Counted from the stretch's first letter, positions 129 to 10,668 are shown. The stretch is DNA of 64,000 nt from IMGVR_UViG_3300032116_014939:1-64000; one strand, 5' to 3'. Numbers and translations are program-made. The notes: a model not told the origin generated them from the sequence alone.

Positions 129-728
129 TTATCTTACCAAACTTACAAAACCTTTTTGGTAATGTGGTGTTCCTTTGTCATCACGGTAATACATCTTCCA
201 AGTGTATATGCCCGACTCACAATAGTACCCACTGTTATTAACATTACCAGTCCAATATTGTGATTGTGATTCAATAACACAAACCAGTTGGCCCCATTGG
301 GTATAAATCTCCAATCGTGGATTGAATACATTGGTTCCCTTGAAGGAAAATATATCATTCAACCCATCGTTGTTAGGTGAAAACGAATTGGGAACATAAA
401 GTTTATGACAGGCAGTGGTGGTGATAGTTAAAGAAGCAGTATCAGTACTACACCCATTTAAATCCACACCATACACTTCAATCAAATGATTATCGGTGGT
501 ATCATCCCAAGTCAATGAAATATCATTATCGGATTCAACCTGTCCAACACTATCAACCGTCCAGTAATAAACAACATTGTCTATGTTCTCAACAGAATAG
601 TTATGTGTCTTAAACTCCGAACACATATCAAGTACATTACCATCGTGTGTTATCGTTAGTGGTAAGGTGTCACACTGTCCAAAGAAGTGTGAAGGAATAA
701 ATAATAATACAAATAAAAGTTTTTTCAT
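129..728 (-). CDS. Secreted protein with T9SS type B (gliding-motility/CHU_C) C-terminal sorting domain
   Basis: N-terminal signal peptide; C-terminal YVPNSFSPNNDGLNDIF...IYTQWG...W.G...GIYTW...KGFVSLVR pattern. Confidence 0.85.
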   Translation of the reverse strand: MKKLLFVLLFIPSHFFGQCDTLPLTITHDGNVLDMCSEFKTHNYSVENIDNVVYYWTVDSVGQVESDNDISLTWDDTTDNHLIEVYGVDLNGCSTDTASLTITTTACHKLYVPNSFSPNNDGLNDIFSFKGTNVFNPRLEIYTQWGQLVCVIESQSQYWTGNVNNSGYYCESGIYTWKMYYRDDKGTPHYQKGFVSLVR

Positions 729-775
729 ACGAAATCAATAATATACACTAGACTTTGTAAAGTCAAAAAAAGTTG

Positions 776-847
776 AGGTCGGAGTTGGAATCGAACCAAC
801 ATAAGGGCTTTTGCAGAACCCCACTTAAACCATTCAGACATCCGACC
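776..847 (-). tRNA. tRNA-Cys(GCA)
   Basis: Cloverleaf; acceptor GGTCGGA/TCCGACC, loop CT-GCA-AA, U73. Confidence 0.93.
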
Positions 848-854
848 TTGTAAG

Positions 855-942
855 CGGAGAGCAGTGGACTCGAACCACGCCCAACTTAATGGGTTACTGT
901 TTAGCAAACATTCGGGGTCACCATTACCCTCCTTTACTCTCC
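855..942 (-). tRNA. tRNA-Ser(GCT)
   Basis: GGAGAGT acceptor, loop TT-GCT-AA, long variable arm, G73. Confidence 0.9.
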
Positions 943-949
943 ATGTTAG

Positions 950-1022
950 TGTGTCTAACCAGATTCGAACTGGTGCTAACAGAACCACAATCTGTCGTGC
1001 TCGCCTCTACACCATAGACACC
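950..1022 (-). tRNA. tRNA-His(GTG)
   Basis: Acceptor GTGTCTA/TAGACAC, loop TT-GTG-GT, encoded G-1, A73. Confidence 0.9.
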
Positions 1023-1124
1023 GTGTAAAAAACACACTCTCAAGCATTCTACTCCCTGCATGACGGAATTGTATCTTACTTAGCCCACCGTCCTCAGTAT
1101 GGGTACTTGAGTTTATGTGTTTTG

Positions 1125-1207
1125 TACCCCTTGTAGGAGTCGAACCTACACGTCTTTAAGACAATGGTTTCTAAGACCACCCTGGTTACCAGTTACAGCA
1201 AAGAGGT
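1125..1207 (-). tRNA. tRNA-Leu(TAG)
   Basis: Loop CT-TAG-AA, long variable arm, TTCGACT T-loop, A73. Confidence 0.9.
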
Positions 1208-1214
1208 AAATAAG

Positions 1215-1301
1215 CGGAAGAGATAGGACTCGAACCTACACATCAGTTTCCCGATACCGGTTTTCAAGACCGGGGCGATACCAATTACGCTTTACTCTTC
1301 C
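1215..1301 (-). tRNA. tRNA-Ser(TGA)
   Basis: GGAAGAG/CTCTTCC acceptor, loop CT-TGA-AA, long variable arm. Confidence 0.92.
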
Positions 1302-1525
1302 AAAGTTCCCCACCCTGAGATTATGGTGAGTAGTCATATCGGTTTTTTTGCTGTTTGAAAAACCTGCTGGGCATCCCCGATAAAAAAGTCAGTTCTTTAC
1401 GTCGGCAGTGATGAACCTATCTACTGTTTTATCCCGAATCGATTGCCTTTGGGAGGCGTTTTTTAACCCTATCCATTGTTAAATGAGTCTTGGATAAAAG
1501 ACTGGTGAGTATCTCTTACTCATTG

Positions 1526-1615
1526 TAGTCAGGACAGGATTCGAACCTGTGCTCCCCATTACAGGGAACGTTGTACAGCCCCCGAAGCGGCTGTGACACC
1601 AATTGCCACCTGACT
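1526..1615 (-). ncRNA. tRNA-like RNA A (anticodon loop replaced by a cUUCGg-capped stem)
   Basis: AGTCAGG/CCTGACT-A acceptor, ACAGG-TTCGAAT-CCTGT T-arm, no 7-nt anticodon loop. Confidence 0.75.
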
Positions 1616-1832
1616 ATATAAAAACACCCTTATCTATCCAACTTACAGGTGTTATGGCTGTCCTCATTGCTGAGTTAGGAATAAACTGTCTTGCTCCCCT
1701 TCGTGATGGGTTTTACCGACCTTAGTAGTCAACTAGAAGGTAATATATATACAAACCTTCAACTCTCCCCTATGGTTATCACACCATTTCTCATCGTATG
1801 GGACATACTATCTGATGATTAGTCAGAACGTG

Positions 1833-1899
1833 TAGTCAGAACAGGATTCGAACCTGCAATCTTCCTTGTTAGGAGCTTTGCCAATTAAGTTACCTGACT
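1833..1899 (-). ncRNA. tRNA-like RNA B (67 nt, 4-nt loop at the anticodon position)
   Basis: AGTCAGG/TCTGACT-A acceptor, intact D-loop and T-arm, TCCT-AACA-AGGA mini arm. Confidence 0.75.
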
Positions 1900-2057
1900 A
1901 TGGTGGTAGGATTGCTTTTTTATAGAAGAGCTCGCCTGCCTCAGAACTTCTTTGAGGATGAGAAGTCCTCTGTGTTGTGAAAGTCGGTAAAAATGCACTT
2001 TTACACCCTTTGTCCTGAACATAAACTATTCCTTTCTCAAGGGAACAACACGTTTAG

Positions 2058-2148
2058 TAGTCAGGGCCGGACTCGAACCGGATACCGTTCTCGACGGATT
2101 AGACAACCTTACGGATTTGGGTCCCTCCCTCATTACGCCCACCTGACT
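2058..2148 (-). ncRNA. tRNA-like RNA C (GUAA tetraloop at the anticodon position)
   Basis: AGTCAGG/CCTGACT-A acceptor, CCGG-TTCGAGT-CCGG T-arm, variable-arm hairpin. Confidence 0.7.
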
Positions 2149-2152
2149 CCGA

Positions 2153-2160
2153 CAAAGATA
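2153..2160 (-). promoter_or_regulatory. Bacteroidota-type -7 promoter box (TATCTTTG) for the second RNA block
   Basis: Matches TAnnTTTG; lies 4 nt upstream of tRNA-like RNA C. Confidence 0.65.
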
Positions 2161-2261
2161 TGGTAAGTTTTTCAATCTACCAAATCTTTTTTTATTCTTC
2201 TCTTCCCCATATTAACCATCCTATGAAGATTCCAATTACAATACCTGATGCCATATTTTTC

Positions 2262-2564
2262 TTATTCTGATAAATCTTTTTCTATTTCTTCATACCATTC
2301 TTCAACCGCAAATAATAATTGGATAAATTCACCATCTTCATCCGATTCATATTTTACGTGGAACCCACCTGTTGATACATCTGTTTTTTCTTTAAACGCC
2401 ATCTTTAATAATCGTCTTGCTTCTTGTCTCAATTCAGGAACCGTTGGAATACCTTCGTCAGAAGCCGCCCACTCCCAATTCAATACTTCCATTACTTTTC
2501 GGACTTGTTCAAACTTGAAGTAGTCCATTATACTATCAATTGCGTCTTGTTGTTTCTGTGTCAT
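2262..2564 (-). CDS. Hypothetical protein
   Basis: 100-aa ORF in tandem with 2566..2994. Confidence 0.75.
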   Translation of the reverse strand: MTQKQQDAIDSIMDYFKFEQVRKVMEVLNWEWAASDEGIPTVPELRQEARRLLKMAFKEKTDVSTGGFHVKYESDEDGEFIQLLFAVEEWYEEIEKDLSE

Positions 2565-2565
2565 A

Positions 2566-2994
2566 TTATTTATCTAAATCTTTATCGTTATCCATCAACT
2601 TAATAAGAGCCTCCTTTTGTTTTTCTTTCTTCACCATCTCAATCATCTTCTTGATAACCGCAATGTTCCCTTCTCTCTTATCTTTGAAGAAATCAAAATA
2701 CATCGGTGGAAACTTCCAACTCTTAATCGTATAGTCAAATCCCAAAATCTCATTTGGTGTGGTATCAGTTCTAATATCCACAAAGTATGAATAATTATCT
2801 TCAAACCATCCGAACACTTGTTGGTGTGGTGGTGCGGAACATCCGATTTCAGGTTGTGATTCTCTATCTGAATAGCAAAACGCATACCCAATACTATATC
2901 CCTCATCAATATCGTAATACCCCCAACAAGGTTCATTAAATCCAAGTTCTTTGAGTTCCAAAGCAATTTCGTATGTAACAAATTCTTTTTCCAT
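2566..2994 (-). CDS. Hypothetical phage protein (FVTYEIALELKELGF N-terminus)
   Basis: 142-aa ORF; TATATTTG box just upstream (2999-3006). Confidence 0.8.
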   Translation of the reverse strand: MEKEFVTYEIALELKELGFNEPCWGYYDIDEGYSIGYAFCYSDRESQPEIGCSAPPHQQVFGWFEDNYSYFVDIRTDTTPNEILGFDYTIKSWKFPPMYFDFFKDKREGNIAVIKKMIEMVKKEKQKEALIKLMDNDKDLDK

Positions 2995-3036
2995 AAGACA
3001 AATATAAGGTAAGTTTATTAATTAAACAAAAAAAAG

Positions 3037-3107
3037 TTGTCCCTGATGGATTCGAACCACCATTATCTGAACCAAAATCAGATGTCCTGCCTTTAGACGA
3101 AGGGACA
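3037..3107 (-). tRNA. tRNA-Gln(TTG)
   Basis: TGTCCCT/AGGGACA acceptor, loop TT-TTG-GT. Confidence 0.92.
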
Positions 3108-3167
3108 ATATGGAGCGTAGTGGGGCTGCAGTCCCCTGAGGCACCTACGCAAGTTACTCCTCTTTAG

Positions 3168-3240
3168 CGGCTCCAACGGGATTCGAACCCGTACCACACG
3201 GCGTGACAAGCCGGCATTGTAGCCATTCAACCATGGAGCC
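3168..3240 (-). tRNA. tRNA-Asp(GTC)
   Basis: GGCTCCA/TGGAGCC acceptor, loop TT-GTC-AC, G73. Confidence 0.92.
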
Positions 3241-3397
3241 AAAAGTGGGTGGAATCAGAGGCCTTCTGTCCACCGAGACCTCGTCGTTGACTTTCGTCAG
3301 AGCGTACCGAGACACTTTTTAAAACCCCATCTTCATCGGATTAACGGACCGACTGCCATATCGGAGGTGGGGGTTGTCCTGTTAATTCAGAACCTCG

Positions 3398-3470
3398 TGG
3401 TACCAGGTGGATTCGAACCACCGACACAAGGATTTTCAGTCCTTTGCTCTACCAACTGAGCTATGGTACC
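3398..3470 (-). tRNA. tRNA-Phe(GAA)
   Basis: Canonical cloverleaf, loop CT-GAA-AA. Confidence 0.95.
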
Positions 3471-3477
3471 ATTATAG

Positions 3478-3552
<75 letters not shown>

Positions 3553-3559
3553 AATTAAG

Positions 3560-3634
3560 TTCTCACGGTTGGAATCGAACCAACGACCTTTTGTGTATCA
3601 GACAAATGCTCTAAGCCAACTGAGCTACGTGAGA
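3560..3634 (-). tRNA. tRNA-Ile(GAT)
   Basis: TCTCACG/CGTGAGA acceptor, loop CT-GAT-AC. Confidence 0.88.
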
Positions 3635-3641
3635 ATATTAG

Positions 3642-3715
3642 AGCCTCCAGTCGGAATCGAACCAACGACCTACTGATTACAAATCAGTCGCTCTGACCTG
3701 CTGAGCTATGGAGGC
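3642..3715 (-). tRNA. tRNA-Thr(TGT)
   Basis: GCCTCCA/TGGAGGC acceptor, loop TT-TGT-AA. Confidence 0.95.
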
Positions 3716-3721
3716 TTGTTG

Positions 3722-3792
3722 CACGACAGTAGGGACTCGAACCCCAAACAACGGTTTTGGAGACCGTGATGATACCATTTCACCACTGACGT
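3722..3792 (-). tRNA. tRNA-Trp(CCA)
   Basis: Loop CT-CCA-AA, G73; one U-U mismatch in the acceptor stem. Confidence 0.9.
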
Positions 3793-3799
3793 GTTTAAG

Positions 3800-3874
3800 T
3801 GACCCCGGTGGGACTCGAACCCACGACTCCCTCATTAAAAGTGAGGTGCTCTAAACCTGCTGAGCTACGAAGTC
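3800..3874 (-). tRNA. tRNA-Lys(TTT)
   Basis: Canonical cloverleaf, loop CT-TTT-AA. Confidence 0.95.
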
Positions 3875-3884
3875 ATTATTTTTG

Positions 3885-3956
3885 CGGTGATGGGGAATTT
3901 CGAAATCCCGACCCTCTGATTAACAGTCAGATGCTCCACCTCTGAGCTACATCACC
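3885..3956 (-). tRNA. tRNA-Asn(GTT), first tRNA of the array
   Basis: GGTGATG/CATCACC acceptor, loop CT-GTT-AA. Confidence 0.93.
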
Positions 3957-3968
3957 ATTTTCCCAATA

Positions 3969-3980
3969 TGTCAAAGAACC
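3969..3980 (-). promoter_or_regulatory. boxA-like antitermination element GGTTCTTTGACA
   Basis: Resembles rRNA-operon boxA (TGCTCTTTAACA); a similar element precedes the large ncRNA at 14035-14047. Confidence 0.55.
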
Positions 3981-4017
3981 AAAAAAAAACCCTGAACTTT
4001 TTTGTAGTCCAGGGTTT
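3981..4017 (-). terminator. Intrinsic terminator (attenuator) between the leader ORF and the tRNA array
   Basis: AAACCCTGGACT-ACAAAAA-AGTTCAGGGTTT hairpin running into a U-tract (9 U in total). Confidence 0.85.
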
Positions 4018-4039
4018 CCTTATATATTTGATGATACGA

Positions 4040-4153
4040 TTACATCTTATTAAGAACCCTGAACTTACGGCAATCCTGCCCCTTAATCGTAAACCACGAT
4101 TGGCCCACGTTTGTCGGGAGATTACTTACGTTATGTGTTGAGTTCTGTTTCAT
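4040..4153 (-). CDS. Putative 37-aa leader peptide MKQNSTHNVSNLPTNVGQSWFTIKGQDCRKFRVLNKM
   Basis: ATG 4153 to TAA 4040, A-rich upstream context, lies between a promoter and the terminator; contains the antiterminator segment 4055-4066. Confidence 0.7.
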   Translation of the reverse strand: MKQNSTHNVSNLPTNVGQSWFTIKGQDCRKFRVLNKM

Positions 4154-4182
4154 TGTTTTCTTATTAAATATCAATTGTTTTA

Positions 4183-4214
4183 CAAAAGTACTACTATTTT
4201 TGAGTTATGTCAAG
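4183..4214 (-). promoter_or_regulatory. Bacteroidota sigma-A-type promoter of the leader/tRNA operon
   Basis: -7 box TACTTTTG at 4183-4190; CTTG(AC) 20 nt upstream at 4211-4214. Confidence 0.7.
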
Positions 4215-4934: not shown

Positions 4935-5482
4935 ATAATAAGTGTTTCTAAATCCACAACAACACCAGTCTTATAGGTAATTTCTTCTGTGAAAATTTCA
5001 TCAATAATTTCCTTCACTTCACTTTCAATTTCAAATCCAATAGATTGGTCGTTAAGAGCTTGTTTTAAATCACGTACTCCTTCATCTGTCATTACTAAAT
5101 CCACCTCACCACCCGGTAAAATATAAACATCTACTTTAAAATATTCTCCATCTTCTTGGTCTATTATTTTAGCTTTGAAATCAAAACTGTATCCACCTGA
5201 AAAGTTATATCGGTCTGTTTTGAAGGTTTTCTGTAATAGTTCTTCAGTCAATTTAACCGATTGTTCCCTACCCAAAAAGTCCCTTAATAATTCAATCAGG
5301 ATATTAAAGTCTCTTTCCCACACATCAACTTCAAAGAAATCCATAATCATATTATCAATATGTGGTTGTTCACCTTTCCTAACTTGTTTCTCAAACAATT
5401 TCTTAATCAAATTTTTAAAATTTGGTTTATCCAACTCTTCCTTCAAAAATTTATTTTGTTCCTCTGTTATTAGGTATTTCAT
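4925..5482 (-). CDS. Hypothetical protein with MKYLITEEQ N-terminal motif
   Basis: 185-aa ORF; TATTTAT motif 5 nt upstream. Confidence 0.8.
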   Translation of the reverse strand: MKYLITEEQNKFLKEELDKPNFKNLIKKLFEKQVRKGEQPHIDNMIMDFFEVDVWERDFNILIELLRDFLGREQSVKLTEELLQKTFKTDRYNFSGGYSFDFKAKIIDQEDGEYFKVDVYILPGGEVDLVMTDEGVRDLKQALNDQSIGFEIESEVKEIIDEIFTEEITYKTGVVVDLETLIIQE

Positions 5483-9420: not shown

Positions 9421-9681
9421 TTATTTAGCTTCTGAAAGTTTTGCTAAAACTTGTTCACTATATTGTACCAACTCCATTTCAGTCGTGATTAAAGATTCAA
9501 CCAAAATCTTGTGTGGGATATGTACTAATGTGTCTGTAACGTTAAAGTATCTAAATGCAACTCCGTTATCAATAGCATCATTTACAAGTTTTAAAAACAA
9601 CTTTGTCTGAATTGCATCAACAAAAGACATTGTTAATACTTTACCGAATTTTTCGTGTTGGATGTTTAATGTTACTTTCAT
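9421..9681 (-). CDS. Hypothetical protein
   Basis: 86-aa ORF; TATATTTG box upstream. Confidence 0.7.
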   Translation of the reverse strand: MKVTLNIQHEKFGKVLTMSFVDAIQTKLFLKLVNDAIDNGVAFRYFNVTDTLVHIPHKILVESLITTEMELVQYSEQVLAKLSEAK

Positions 9682-9699
9682 AACACAAATATAGACAAA

Positions 9700-10668
9700 C
9701 TATTCTTCACTTCCAAACTTTTTGAAATAAAAATCAATAGTTCTATCTAACCCTTCGTCAAAATTAACTTTAGGTTCCCATCCAATTTGTTCTTTTGCTT
9801 TAGTATAATCAATGGAGTATCTAAAGTCATGTCCTTTTCTATCTTCAACAAATGTTATTAAGTCCTGTGAGTTTTGTTCCCATTGTTTAAGATTATCAAT
9901 TTTATCACAAACCATCTTAACCAATCTGAGGTTATTTAATTCATTACCACCACCAATACAATAAGTTTCACCTACCTTACCTTTATGGAATACCAAATCA
10001 ATTGCATCCACATGGTCTTGGACATATAACCAATCCCTAACATTCTGTCCGTTACCATACACAGGTATTGGTTCACCATTAAGGATACTTTTAATGATTG
10101 TCGGAATTAATTTTTCTTCATGCTGGTTTGGCCCAAAATTATTTGAGCAGTTTGATATAACAATTGGTAATCCGTAAGTGTGATAATACGCTCTAACAAA
10201 ATGGTCAGAAGAAGCTTTAGACGCTGAGTAAGGACTTCTTGGGTCGTAAGCAGTTTTTTCATCAAAAGAACCCACAGCCCCTAAATGTCCAAAAACCTCA
10301 TCCGTTGATATATGGTAAAATAATTTAATACCATACTTAACAGAAGCATCCAACAAATTCAATGTTCCAATAATATTTGTTTGAACAAACTCCATCGGAT
10401 TTAGTATTGAGTTATCAACATGTGATTCAGCTGCAAAATGTATAACTGAGTCAAAATTATAATTTTCAAATAACTTAAATAATCTTTCTCTCTCAGTAAT
10501 ACTGAACTTAATTATTTTTGCGTTTTGACTATTTTCAATATTACCCTCATCAGCCGCATATGTTTCACTATCAAGGATAACTAAATTATAGTCAGGATAT
10601 TTCTTTTTAAAGGTATTATAAAAATTAGAACCAATAAAACCTAATCCACCAGTTATTAATATATTCAT
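9700..10668 (-). CDS. rfbB: dTDP-glucose 4,6-dehydratase
   Basis: TGGLGFIG, HFAAESHVD, STDEV, YSASK, NCSNNFGP, RDWLYV and DRKGHD motifs. Confidence 0.95.
   Translation of the reverse strand: MNILITGGLGFIGSNFYNTFKKKYPDYNLVILDSETYAADEGNIENSQNAKIIKFSITERERLFKLFENYNFDSVIHFAAESHVDNSILNPMEFVQTNIIGTLNLLDASVKYGIKLFYHISTDEVFGHLGAVGSFDEKTAYDPRSPYSASKASSDHFVRAYYHTYGLPIVISNCSNNFGPNQHEEKLIPTIIKSILNGEPIPVYGNGQNVRDWLYVQDHVDAIDLVFHKGKVGETYCIGGGNELNNLRLVKMVCDKIDNLKQWEQNSQDLITFVEDRKGHDFRYSIDYTKAKEQIGWEPKVNFDEGLDRTIDFYFKKFGSEE

Follow-up and report, generated by a model that had tools for sequence, protein, structure and literature searches.

An array of phage tRNA genes in the 64,000-nucleotide (nt) stretch IMGVR_UViG_3300032116_014939:1-64000, referred to as the window, is preceded on the minus strand by a leader that is probably a translation-dependent, ribosome-mediated transcription attenuator of the array. 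An earlier sequence-only reading of the window had interpreted the leader as an attenuator of the trp/his type. Comparison with relatives, covariation of the pairing segments, and a ribosome footprint model all support this interpretation. The leader combines a conserved short open reading frame (ORF), a terminator with no promoter between it and the tRNAs in the window, an antiterminator that is maintained, and array-related codons placed before the antiterminator core. Judged at the level of sequence, the feature is real and widespread, and a known mechanism would be applied here to a new target, tRNA genes.

Phage tRNA genes are commonly viewed as a fixed supplement to the host pool, and to our knowledge little has been established about how their expression is controlled. 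The sequence-only reading knew of no attenuator of a phage tRNA operon. In agreement, no description of attenuation of tRNA genes or phage tRNA arrays was found in Rfam or in the full-text literature, a collection that leaves most subscription journals outside its coverage. If the assignment is true, the leader would represent the first case of tRNA genes under ribosome-mediated attenuation, and the logic of the amino-acid attenuators would extend to the tRNAs themselves.

Organization of the leader

The leader is sequentially composed of a promoter, an A/U-rich segment, a short ORF, an intrinsic terminator, and a boxA motif, followed by the first tRNA gene, tRNA-Asn (Table 1). The promoter had been placed at 4183-4214 and is found there as a TTGACA element and a -7 box, TACTTTTG. 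We take the latter to be a Bacteroidota -7 box by its fit to the consensus TAnnTTTG. The 37-codon ORF has its ATG and TAA in place, as claimed, and contains Asn codons at positions 4, 8, 11, 15, and 35.

The intrinsic terminator is present, but its stem is longer than had been proposed, and the element extends over 4021-3981 rather than 4017-3981. The stem is built from 16 pairs, between 4021-4006 and 3998-3983, and is capped by a 7-nt loop and followed by a U-run to 3981. The folding energy is -19.7 kcal/mol (z -4.35).

The 12-mer AAGTTCAGGGTT links the ORF to the terminator. Its only two exact copies in the 64 kb are located on the minus strand at 4066-4055, in the last codons of the ORF, and at 3999-3988, in the 3' arm of the terminator. 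When up to one mismatch is allowed, the window contains 4 matches versus 0.59 expected, a count reached by no shuffle. The segment 4016-4006 in the terminator 5' arm is complementary to both copies. The repeat and its double complementarity are thus as the sequence-only reading had described them. The upstream copy is designated region 2, the terminator 5' arm region 3, and the terminator 3' arm with the U-run region 4.

The boxA motif, GTTCTTTGACATATTGG, occurs once in the window. It is separated from the terminator by 3 nt and from tRNA-Asn by 6 nt. A separate promoter between the terminator and tRNA-Asn, which had been named as an observation that would speak against attenuation, is absent, as the two gaps provide no space for one and no fitting -7 box is found.

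Table 1. Elements of the leader and the array behind it, in the order of transcription
Feature	Position	Strand	Basis and details
Promoter upstream element TTGACA	4208..4213	minus	Direct reading; contains the Bacteroidota -33 TTG; A-run on its 5' side
Promoter -7 box TACTTTTG	4183..4190	minus	Direct reading
Leader ORF, 37 codons	4040..4153	minus	ATG 4153, TAA 4042-4040
Rod of ORF RNA	4053..4146	minus	Helices 4146-4140:4059-4053 (1:2), 4131-4129:4069-4067, 4125-4119:4076-4070, 4118-4116:4081-4079, 4109-4101:4096-4088
Region 2, upstream copy of the terminator 3' arm and antiterminator core	4055..4066	minus	Repeat, folding, and pair counts
Last four codons and stop; lower antiterminator helices (with 4026-4018) and nested hairpin 4046-4043:4033-4030	4030..4054	minus	Folding
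Region 3, terminator 5' arm, common to antiterminator and terminator	4006..4021	minus	Folding
Region 4, terminator 3' arm and U-run	3981..3998	minus	Folding
rrn-type boxA GTTCTTTGACATATTGG	3963..3979	minus	Sole copy in the window
Genes proposed to be controlled	775..3956	minus	tRNA-Asn, Lys, Trp, Thr, Ile, Pro, Phe, Asp, Gln; two small ORFs and two aberrant tRNA-like elements; Ser, Leu, His, Cys

Alternative folds and the position of the ribosome

When the transcript is cut before the terminator 3' arm, the leader is predicted to fold into an antiterminator. Its core consists of 10 base pairs (bp) between regions 2 and 3 (4065-4056:4015-4006). The core is extended by two lower helices of 5 bp (4055-4051:4022-4018) and 3 bp (4050-4048:4026-4024), which enclose a nested hairpin at 4046-4030. 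The antiterminator and the terminator compete for region 3. The proposal of two mutually exclusive helices therefore holds, although the antiterminator exceeds the 12-mer in which it had been recognized. The segment containing the antiterminator (4068-4003) has a folding energy of -20.8 kcal/mol, compared with -19.7 kcal/mol for the terminator. The two folds are near-isoenergetic, as expected for a switch. In the fold of the whole leader (z -4.0), the RNA of the ORF forms a rod and the terminator is closed.

The effect of a ribosome was modeled by blocking a 30-nt footprint codon by codon and scoring the pairing at the stage when region 4 is still to be transcribed. The mean probability of the core between regions 2 and 3, P(2:3), is 0.87-0.90 without a ribosome or with the A site on codons 1-25, so a ribosome stalled early in the ORF leaves the antiterminator intact in the model, as the sequence-only reading had supposed. 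With the A site on codons 28-37, P(2:3) drops to 0. The related claim, that a ribosome reaching the end of the ORF masks the upstream copy, holds for these codons but only in part for a ribosome on the stop codon, which is considered below. Since P(2:3) is high in the absence of a ribosome, the default state without translation is predicted to be read-through, unlike that of the trp operon.

These folds suggest the following mechanism. Transcription by the host RNA polymerase would begin at the Bacteroidota-type promoter and produce the 37-codon leader. A ribosome moving at full speed would cover region 2 and the last codons (the last ten and the stop) as region 3 emerges, the terminator would form, and transcription would stop at about 3981. 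A ribosome that is delayed in codons 1-25, or is absent, would allow region 2 to pair with region 3, and the polymerase would read through to the tRNAs. The boxA motif would then load Nus factors, letting the long untranslated array be transcribed to its end. Shortage of any charged tRNA represented in the leader would switch the array on. Accumulating phage tRNAs would speed up leader translation and switch the array off, closing a demand-driven feedback loop. If true, such a circuit would answer automatically to depletion of host tRNAs by shut-off, codon-usage mismatch, or tRNA-cleaving defence systems. It suggests that an actual ribosome translating a test peptide tells the phage whether the codons of its own tRNAs are read fast enough, and that the array is transcribed only if they are not.

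Other assignments of the folded region were rejected. The ORF region is not a recognizable decayed tRNA or tRNA-like element, as ARAGORN and the Rfam tRNA model are both blank across 3957-4176. Two weak Rfam matches, to rnk_leader in the window (27 bits versus a threshold of 50) and to STnc240 in the leader L019 (sub-threshold), are taken as chance matches driven by the terminators.

Conservation among close relatives

Eighteen distinct variants of the window leader, from viral and metagenome contigs, were aligned. Pairing is counted in cells. The TTGACA element and the -7 box are invariant in the 18 variants and the spacer between them varies; the -7 variant of relatives, TAACTTTG, also matches TAnnTTTG. 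The ORF is intact in 18 of 18 variants, and its variable columns are distributed over the three codon positions as 7, 10, and 14, with the third position highest.

The pairs of both competing folds are retained. The terminator is paired in 285 of 286 cells, the core between regions 2 and 3 in 173 of 180, and the nested hairpin in 72 of 72. Six relatives have G at 3993 in region 4 but retain A at 4060, its counterpart in region 2, and both residues pair with U4011. Regions 2 and 4 can thus diverge and still both pair with region 3, indicating that the pairing with region 3 is conserved rather than the identity of the two copies. The two most divergent variants, L288 and L344, lack the upper antiterminator pairs; their region 3 has undergone an A-to-G change that adds lower pairs with GGGTTC. 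The expectation that the ORF and the repeat would be found conserved in an alignment of relatives is borne out in the 18 variants, with covariation seen across dozens of unrelated families as described in the next section.

The helices of the rod are also conserved, with pairs present in 161/162, 53/54, 123/126, and 52/54 cells. Two compensatory double changes are observed in the rod, both in L288: the pair 4131-4067 changes from A-U to G-C and the pair 4125-4070 from G-C to A-U.

Five relatives (L001, at about 3614-3715, and L002-L005) contain a 75-nt insertion between the terminator and boxA. The insertion carries a tRNA-type T arm (GGGTTCGAATCCC) and is not called as a tRNA by ARAGORN.

The same architecture in unrelated leader families

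More than 40 unrelated leader families, drawn from viral and metagenome contigs, have the layout of the window at the head of tRNA arrays. The sequence upstream of boxA was inspected in loci that share nothing else with the window, and likewise in a metagenome scan. In nearly all loci with a terminator before boxA, the elements follow the same order: promoter box, ORF, region 2 at the last codons, terminator, boxA, and tRNAs. The ORF has 20-42 codons and mostly starts with MK, the arrays comprise 5-20 tRNA genes, and each phage possesses one to three leader units. The median distances are 12 nt from the end of region 2 to the end of the stop codon, 36 nt from region 2 to the terminator, and 12 nt from the terminator to boxA.

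Region 2 covaries with the terminator 5' arm from family to family, as in AGTTCGGGT/ACCCGAACT, AGTCGGGT/ACCCGACT, GAGATGG/CCATCTC, and GTTCGGGC/GCCCGAAC. Over 74 distinct boxA-linked terminators, the complementarity of region 2 to region 3 has a median z of -2.58 and reaches p <= 0.05 in 65%. The corresponding values for 118 other terminators in the same loci, used as a control, are +0.22 and 19% (Mann-Whitney p 2.4e-13). Within 150 nt upstream, 94% of 173 distinct segments contain a complete ATG-to-stop ORF of 20 codons or more, compared with 22.5% of dinucleotide shuffles, and the longest complete ORF has a median of 31 codons versus 11.5 in shuffles. An exact TAnnTTTG precedes the leader ATG, at a median distance of 29 nt, in 50 of 87 other loci, versus 13 of 87 on the opposite strand. 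The RNA structure of the leader is mostly not strong in the other families, with a median z of -1.3, and the peptide sequences are otherwise highly diverse. Exact look-up of ten leader peptides retrieved three in the protein collection, all annotated as "hypothetical protein" and found in phage-like contexts.

The unit could instead be an independent small gene, in which promoter, ORF, and terminator encode a peptide or an RNA of about 195 nt, and the tRNAs are expressed by leaky read-through or from an unrecognised promoter. The unit does have its own promoter and a strong terminator, and in some families a further TAnnTTTG promoter lies between the terminator and boxA. One peptide family resembles a small membrane peptide, with a hydrophobic stretch and then an acidic tail, and RNAs that derive from attenuators and act in trans are known (PMC6614838). 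However, a small gene leaves unexplained both the covariation of region 2 with the terminator arm and the in-frame match between the codons preceding region 2 and the downstream tRNAs (see below), and the peptide sequences are otherwise very diverse. We consider this explanation improbable. A reading of the hydrophobic-then-acidic family as membrane toxins was rejected because the other families are hydrophilic.

Among the terminators without boxA, 19% have a significantly complementary upstream segment, where 5% would be expected. Additional attenuators, followed by some other element than boxA, may be among them.

Leader codons match the tRNAs of the array

The leaders contain codons for the amino acids carried by the tRNAs that follow them. 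Families were clustered at 50% identity and labels were permuted among families; the first set served as the discovery set. For the first tRNA after boxA, 72 cognate residues are present in the leaders versus 49 +- 7 expected (30 families, p 0.0014). The result is replicated in an independent metagenome scan, in 14 families with less than 50% identity to the earlier peptides (37 versus 23 +- 4, p 0.0012). In the 44 combined families, the enrichment is confined to the frame of the ORF, with z of 4.5 compared with 0.05 and -1.5 in the shifted frames. It is also confined to codons -15 to -1 before region 2, a zone in which stalling of a ribosome would keep region 2 available for pairing. Agreement is observed in 12 of 13 amino-acid classes (sign test p 0.0017).

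The match extends to the rest of the array. The second, third, and fourth tRNAs display the same enrichment, with z of 3.9, 3.9, and 3.5. The leader before region 2 holds 96% of the array amino acids (Met excluded) versus 73 +- 3% for permuted arrays (z 8.1). In frame, the leader covers the full set of array amino acids in 24 of 30 families; in the shifted frames, the coverage is 62% and 57% and is complete in 2 and 0 families. The leader of L315 is built solely from amino acids of its array's tRNAs, and that of L419 has five consecutive Thr codons ahead of tRNA-Thr.

In the window, all 13 of 13 array amino acids are found in leader residues 2-29, for which the probability by chance is 0.0015 in a random 28-mer of the window composition. 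Ala, Glu, and Tyr are missing from leader and array alike. Val, Gly, and Arg are present in the leader only, and the array of the sister contig L006 has Val and Gly tRNAs. The first tRNA is specific for Asn, and four Asn codons precede region 2.

The codon match explains the single Trp and Cys found in most leaders. The conserved single Trp was also considered as the mark of an arrest peptide of the TnaC/SecM type. The Trp enrichment is modest (1.6-fold, p 0.07), and the presence of tRNA-Trp in the arrays provides a better explanation.

These data point, with rather less assurance than the attenuator itself, to leaders that act as codon checklists in many large Bacteroidota phages, where a shortage of any tRNA of the array would turn on the whole array. 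Such a reading yields a rule at the level of sequence, that the composition of the leader equals the content of the array, which could be used to annotate tRNA operons in metagenomic phages.

A sensor of general translation status, for example of host shut-off, would need no codon specificity, and the match would be a by-product of ancestry or composition. It fits with the folding, which predicts read-through whenever codons 28-37 are uncovered, whatever the cause, and with the fact that each cognate amino acid mostly occurs only once or twice per leader. However, an effect of composition would appear in all frames, and this is not seen. The match is moreover replicated in new families, holds across nearly all amino-acid classes, and is position-specific. 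We therefore assign the general sensor a low probability.

It appears extremely unlikely that the leader RNA itself recognizes uncharged tRNA as a T-box does, through base pairing between codon-like triplets and anticodons. Triplets cognate to the downstream tRNAs are present, and the conserved UGG could in principle pair with the tRNA 3' end. However, the cognate triplets are enriched in the ORF frame only, a single leader of about 100 nt matches many different tRNAs, and UGG is accounted for by the tRNA-Trp genes of the arrays. Permissive Rfam scans of the window region and eight other leaders gave no family match and no T-box.

A last alternative is antitermination by a factor or by RNA alone, through protein binding or through action on the polymerase like HK022 put/EAR, with the ORF being incidental. 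The rod is conserved with compensatory changes in the window family, where the fold z is -4, and boxA suggests that modification of the elongation complex is used at the locus. An incidental ORF is difficult to reconcile with its retention in 94% of loci versus 22.5% of shuffles, or with a codon match that has a z of 8.1 in frame and is negative out of frame. Most other families lack a comparably strong leader fold (median z -1.3), and Rfam contains no match. This alternative is regarded as very improbable.

Observations weighing against attenuation

Several observations weigh against a ribosome-mediated attenuator, or limit how far it can be generalized. First, a ribosome on the stop codon covers only 3 nt of the 12-mer, and P(2:3) is then 0.70. 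Termination would therefore rest on the lower antiterminator helices, which such a ribosome covers together with the nested hairpin, or on timing. Second, the 1:2 helix (4146-4140 with 4059-4053), which would act as an anti-antiterminator, is predicted in the window but weakly supported outside the window family (mean z -0.57, Fisher p 0.02), and within the family it is invariant and hence uninformative. Third, the Asn codons of the window are located 15-26 codons before region 2, upstream of the zone of -15 to -1 seen in the class. Fourth, a second TAnnTTTG promoter is present between the terminator and boxA in several families, among them L024, L094, L043, and L131, so the attenuator cannot be the sole control in those families. 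Fifth, the families may share ancestry, which would inflate the significance given by the permutation p-values; no assumption that families are independent enters the sign test over amino-acid classes or the frame controls. Finally, the phage and its host are uncultured, and searches of 50,697 deposited phage genomes, in both near and distant DNA modes, retrieved no relative of either the window or the leader. The matches obtained in these genomes are tRNA fragments or chance.

Arrays of the L024, L094, L043, and L131 type probably combine an attenuated promoter with a second, unattenuated one in tandem. In L024 and L094, the TTTG that ends the terminator U-run sits 19 nt upstream of the extra -7 box, like a -33 element.

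The boxA motif

The sequence-only reading had placed a boxA before tRNA-Asn, and the motif found there is shared with ribosomal RNA (rRNA) spacers. The window motif resembles the classical boxA consensus. The pattern GTTCTTTGAC(R)TATTGG occurs in more than 115 viral contigs, directly before tRNAs or after a TAnnTTTG box. In two bacterial genomes, the 10-mer core occurs within 16S-tRNA-tRNA-23S spacers, on the same strand as the rRNA, at a distance of 21 nt (L216) or 52 nt (L184) upstream of the 23S rRNA. A site shortly upstream of the 23S rRNA is the classical position of a spacer boxA, and this location supports the identification. The scan of bacterial genomes used a loose pattern that returned mostly chance matches in unrelated phyla, and it served to place boxA in the rRNA spacers. 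By this comparison, phage tRNA arrays carry the rRNA-type boxA of the host at their head, which is a finding in its own right. The Nus antitermination factors (NusB/NusE) presumably load at this site.

Further copies of boxA stand between neighbouring tRNAs inside arrays, with neither leader nor terminator, as in L018 (7344-7360), L025, L067, L096, and others. The motif is thus reused along phage tRNA arrays, like in the spacers of rRNA operons. In addition, AACATA(T) recurs at about codons 5-8 of the leader in many families (4138-4130 in the window), in two reading frames that encode His-Ile/Asn or Asn-Ile. The sequence of this motif is similar to that of the 3' half of boxA (GACATATTGG).

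Comparison with known systems

Known leader-peptide attenuators include trpL, hisL, pheL, thrL, leuL, and ilvL, which belong to amino-acid operons, and that of pheST. The tRNA leaders share with the attenuators of amino-acid operons a promoter followed by a short ORF, an intrinsic terminator that precedes the genes under control, an antiterminator with one arm in common with the terminator, and regulatory codons immediately upstream of the antiterminator. In both, the position of the ribosome would decide between the two folds. The tRNA leaders differ in the genes controlled, which are phage tRNAs and not enzymes, and in carrying one or a few codons for many amino acids rather than a run for one. 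Furthermore, the 1:2 helix is not general among them, the default state without a ribosome is predicted to be read-through, and a boxA follows the terminator.

Attenuation of amino-acid operons by leader peptides has been reported in Flavobacterium psychrophilum (PMC9723704), which indicates that the machinery of a flavobacterial host supports the mechanism. The F. psychrophilum attenuators (PMC9723704) and the Bacteroid-trp leader of Rfam use the same mechanism in the presumed host phylum, but control amino-acid biosynthesis.

T-box riboswitches likewise decide between a terminator and an antiterminator and report the state of specific tRNAs. However, T-boxes bind uncharged tRNA directly, without translation, and control synthetase or amino-acid genes. 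The tRNA leaders match them in neither sequence nor structure, and their codon signal is frame-specific.

The lambda N/nut and Q systems and HK022 put resemble the tRNA leaders in that a phage controls the read-through of terminators near a promoter and uses boxA-type elements. Those systems employ a phage protein or a polymerase-modifying RNA, whereas the evidence here points to a translating ribosome. The boxA of the window is the same motif as the rrn boxA, the NusB/NusE site, upstream of the 23S rRNA in Bacteroidota 16S-23S spacers. It differs in being placed at the head of a phage tRNA array, downstream of an attenuator, where Nus binding would be expected.

The tRNA array and neighbouring genes

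The array begins with tRNA-Asn at 3956-3884 and continues with 13 more tRNAs on the same strand to 775. The window is part of a 242-kb contig, IMGVR_UViG_3300032116_014939, which it matches at 100% across the leader and the protein next to it. PHROGs scans of ten large window proteins identified no structural genes, and the viral nature of the contig thus rests on the IMG/VR classification and the gene content.

Two tRNA-like elements, at 1833-1899 and 1526-1615 on the minus strand, lie inside the array. They have a common acceptor stem and T arm with aberrant anticodon regions. One of the two possesses a 4-bp stem with a tetraloop. The other contains an insertion of about 38 nt and is labeled tRNA-Pro(cgg) by ARAGORN, with a weak Rfam score of 29.9. 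Both are probably non-decoding tRNA-like RNAs.

The ORF that immediately follows the final tRNA (129-728, minus strand) encodes 199 amino acids with a hydrophobic N terminus that resembles a signal peptide.

Two other RNA genes were observed near arrays of this type. In the viral contig L323, a full-length tmRNA gene (9426-9781, 118 bits) adjoins the tRNA array. In L315, a tRNA with the anticodon CTA (5291-5363), which is amber-reading and is labeled Pyl by ARAGORN, is located just upstream of the leader unit. This tRNA is a hint that some of these phages reassign or suppress a stop codon.

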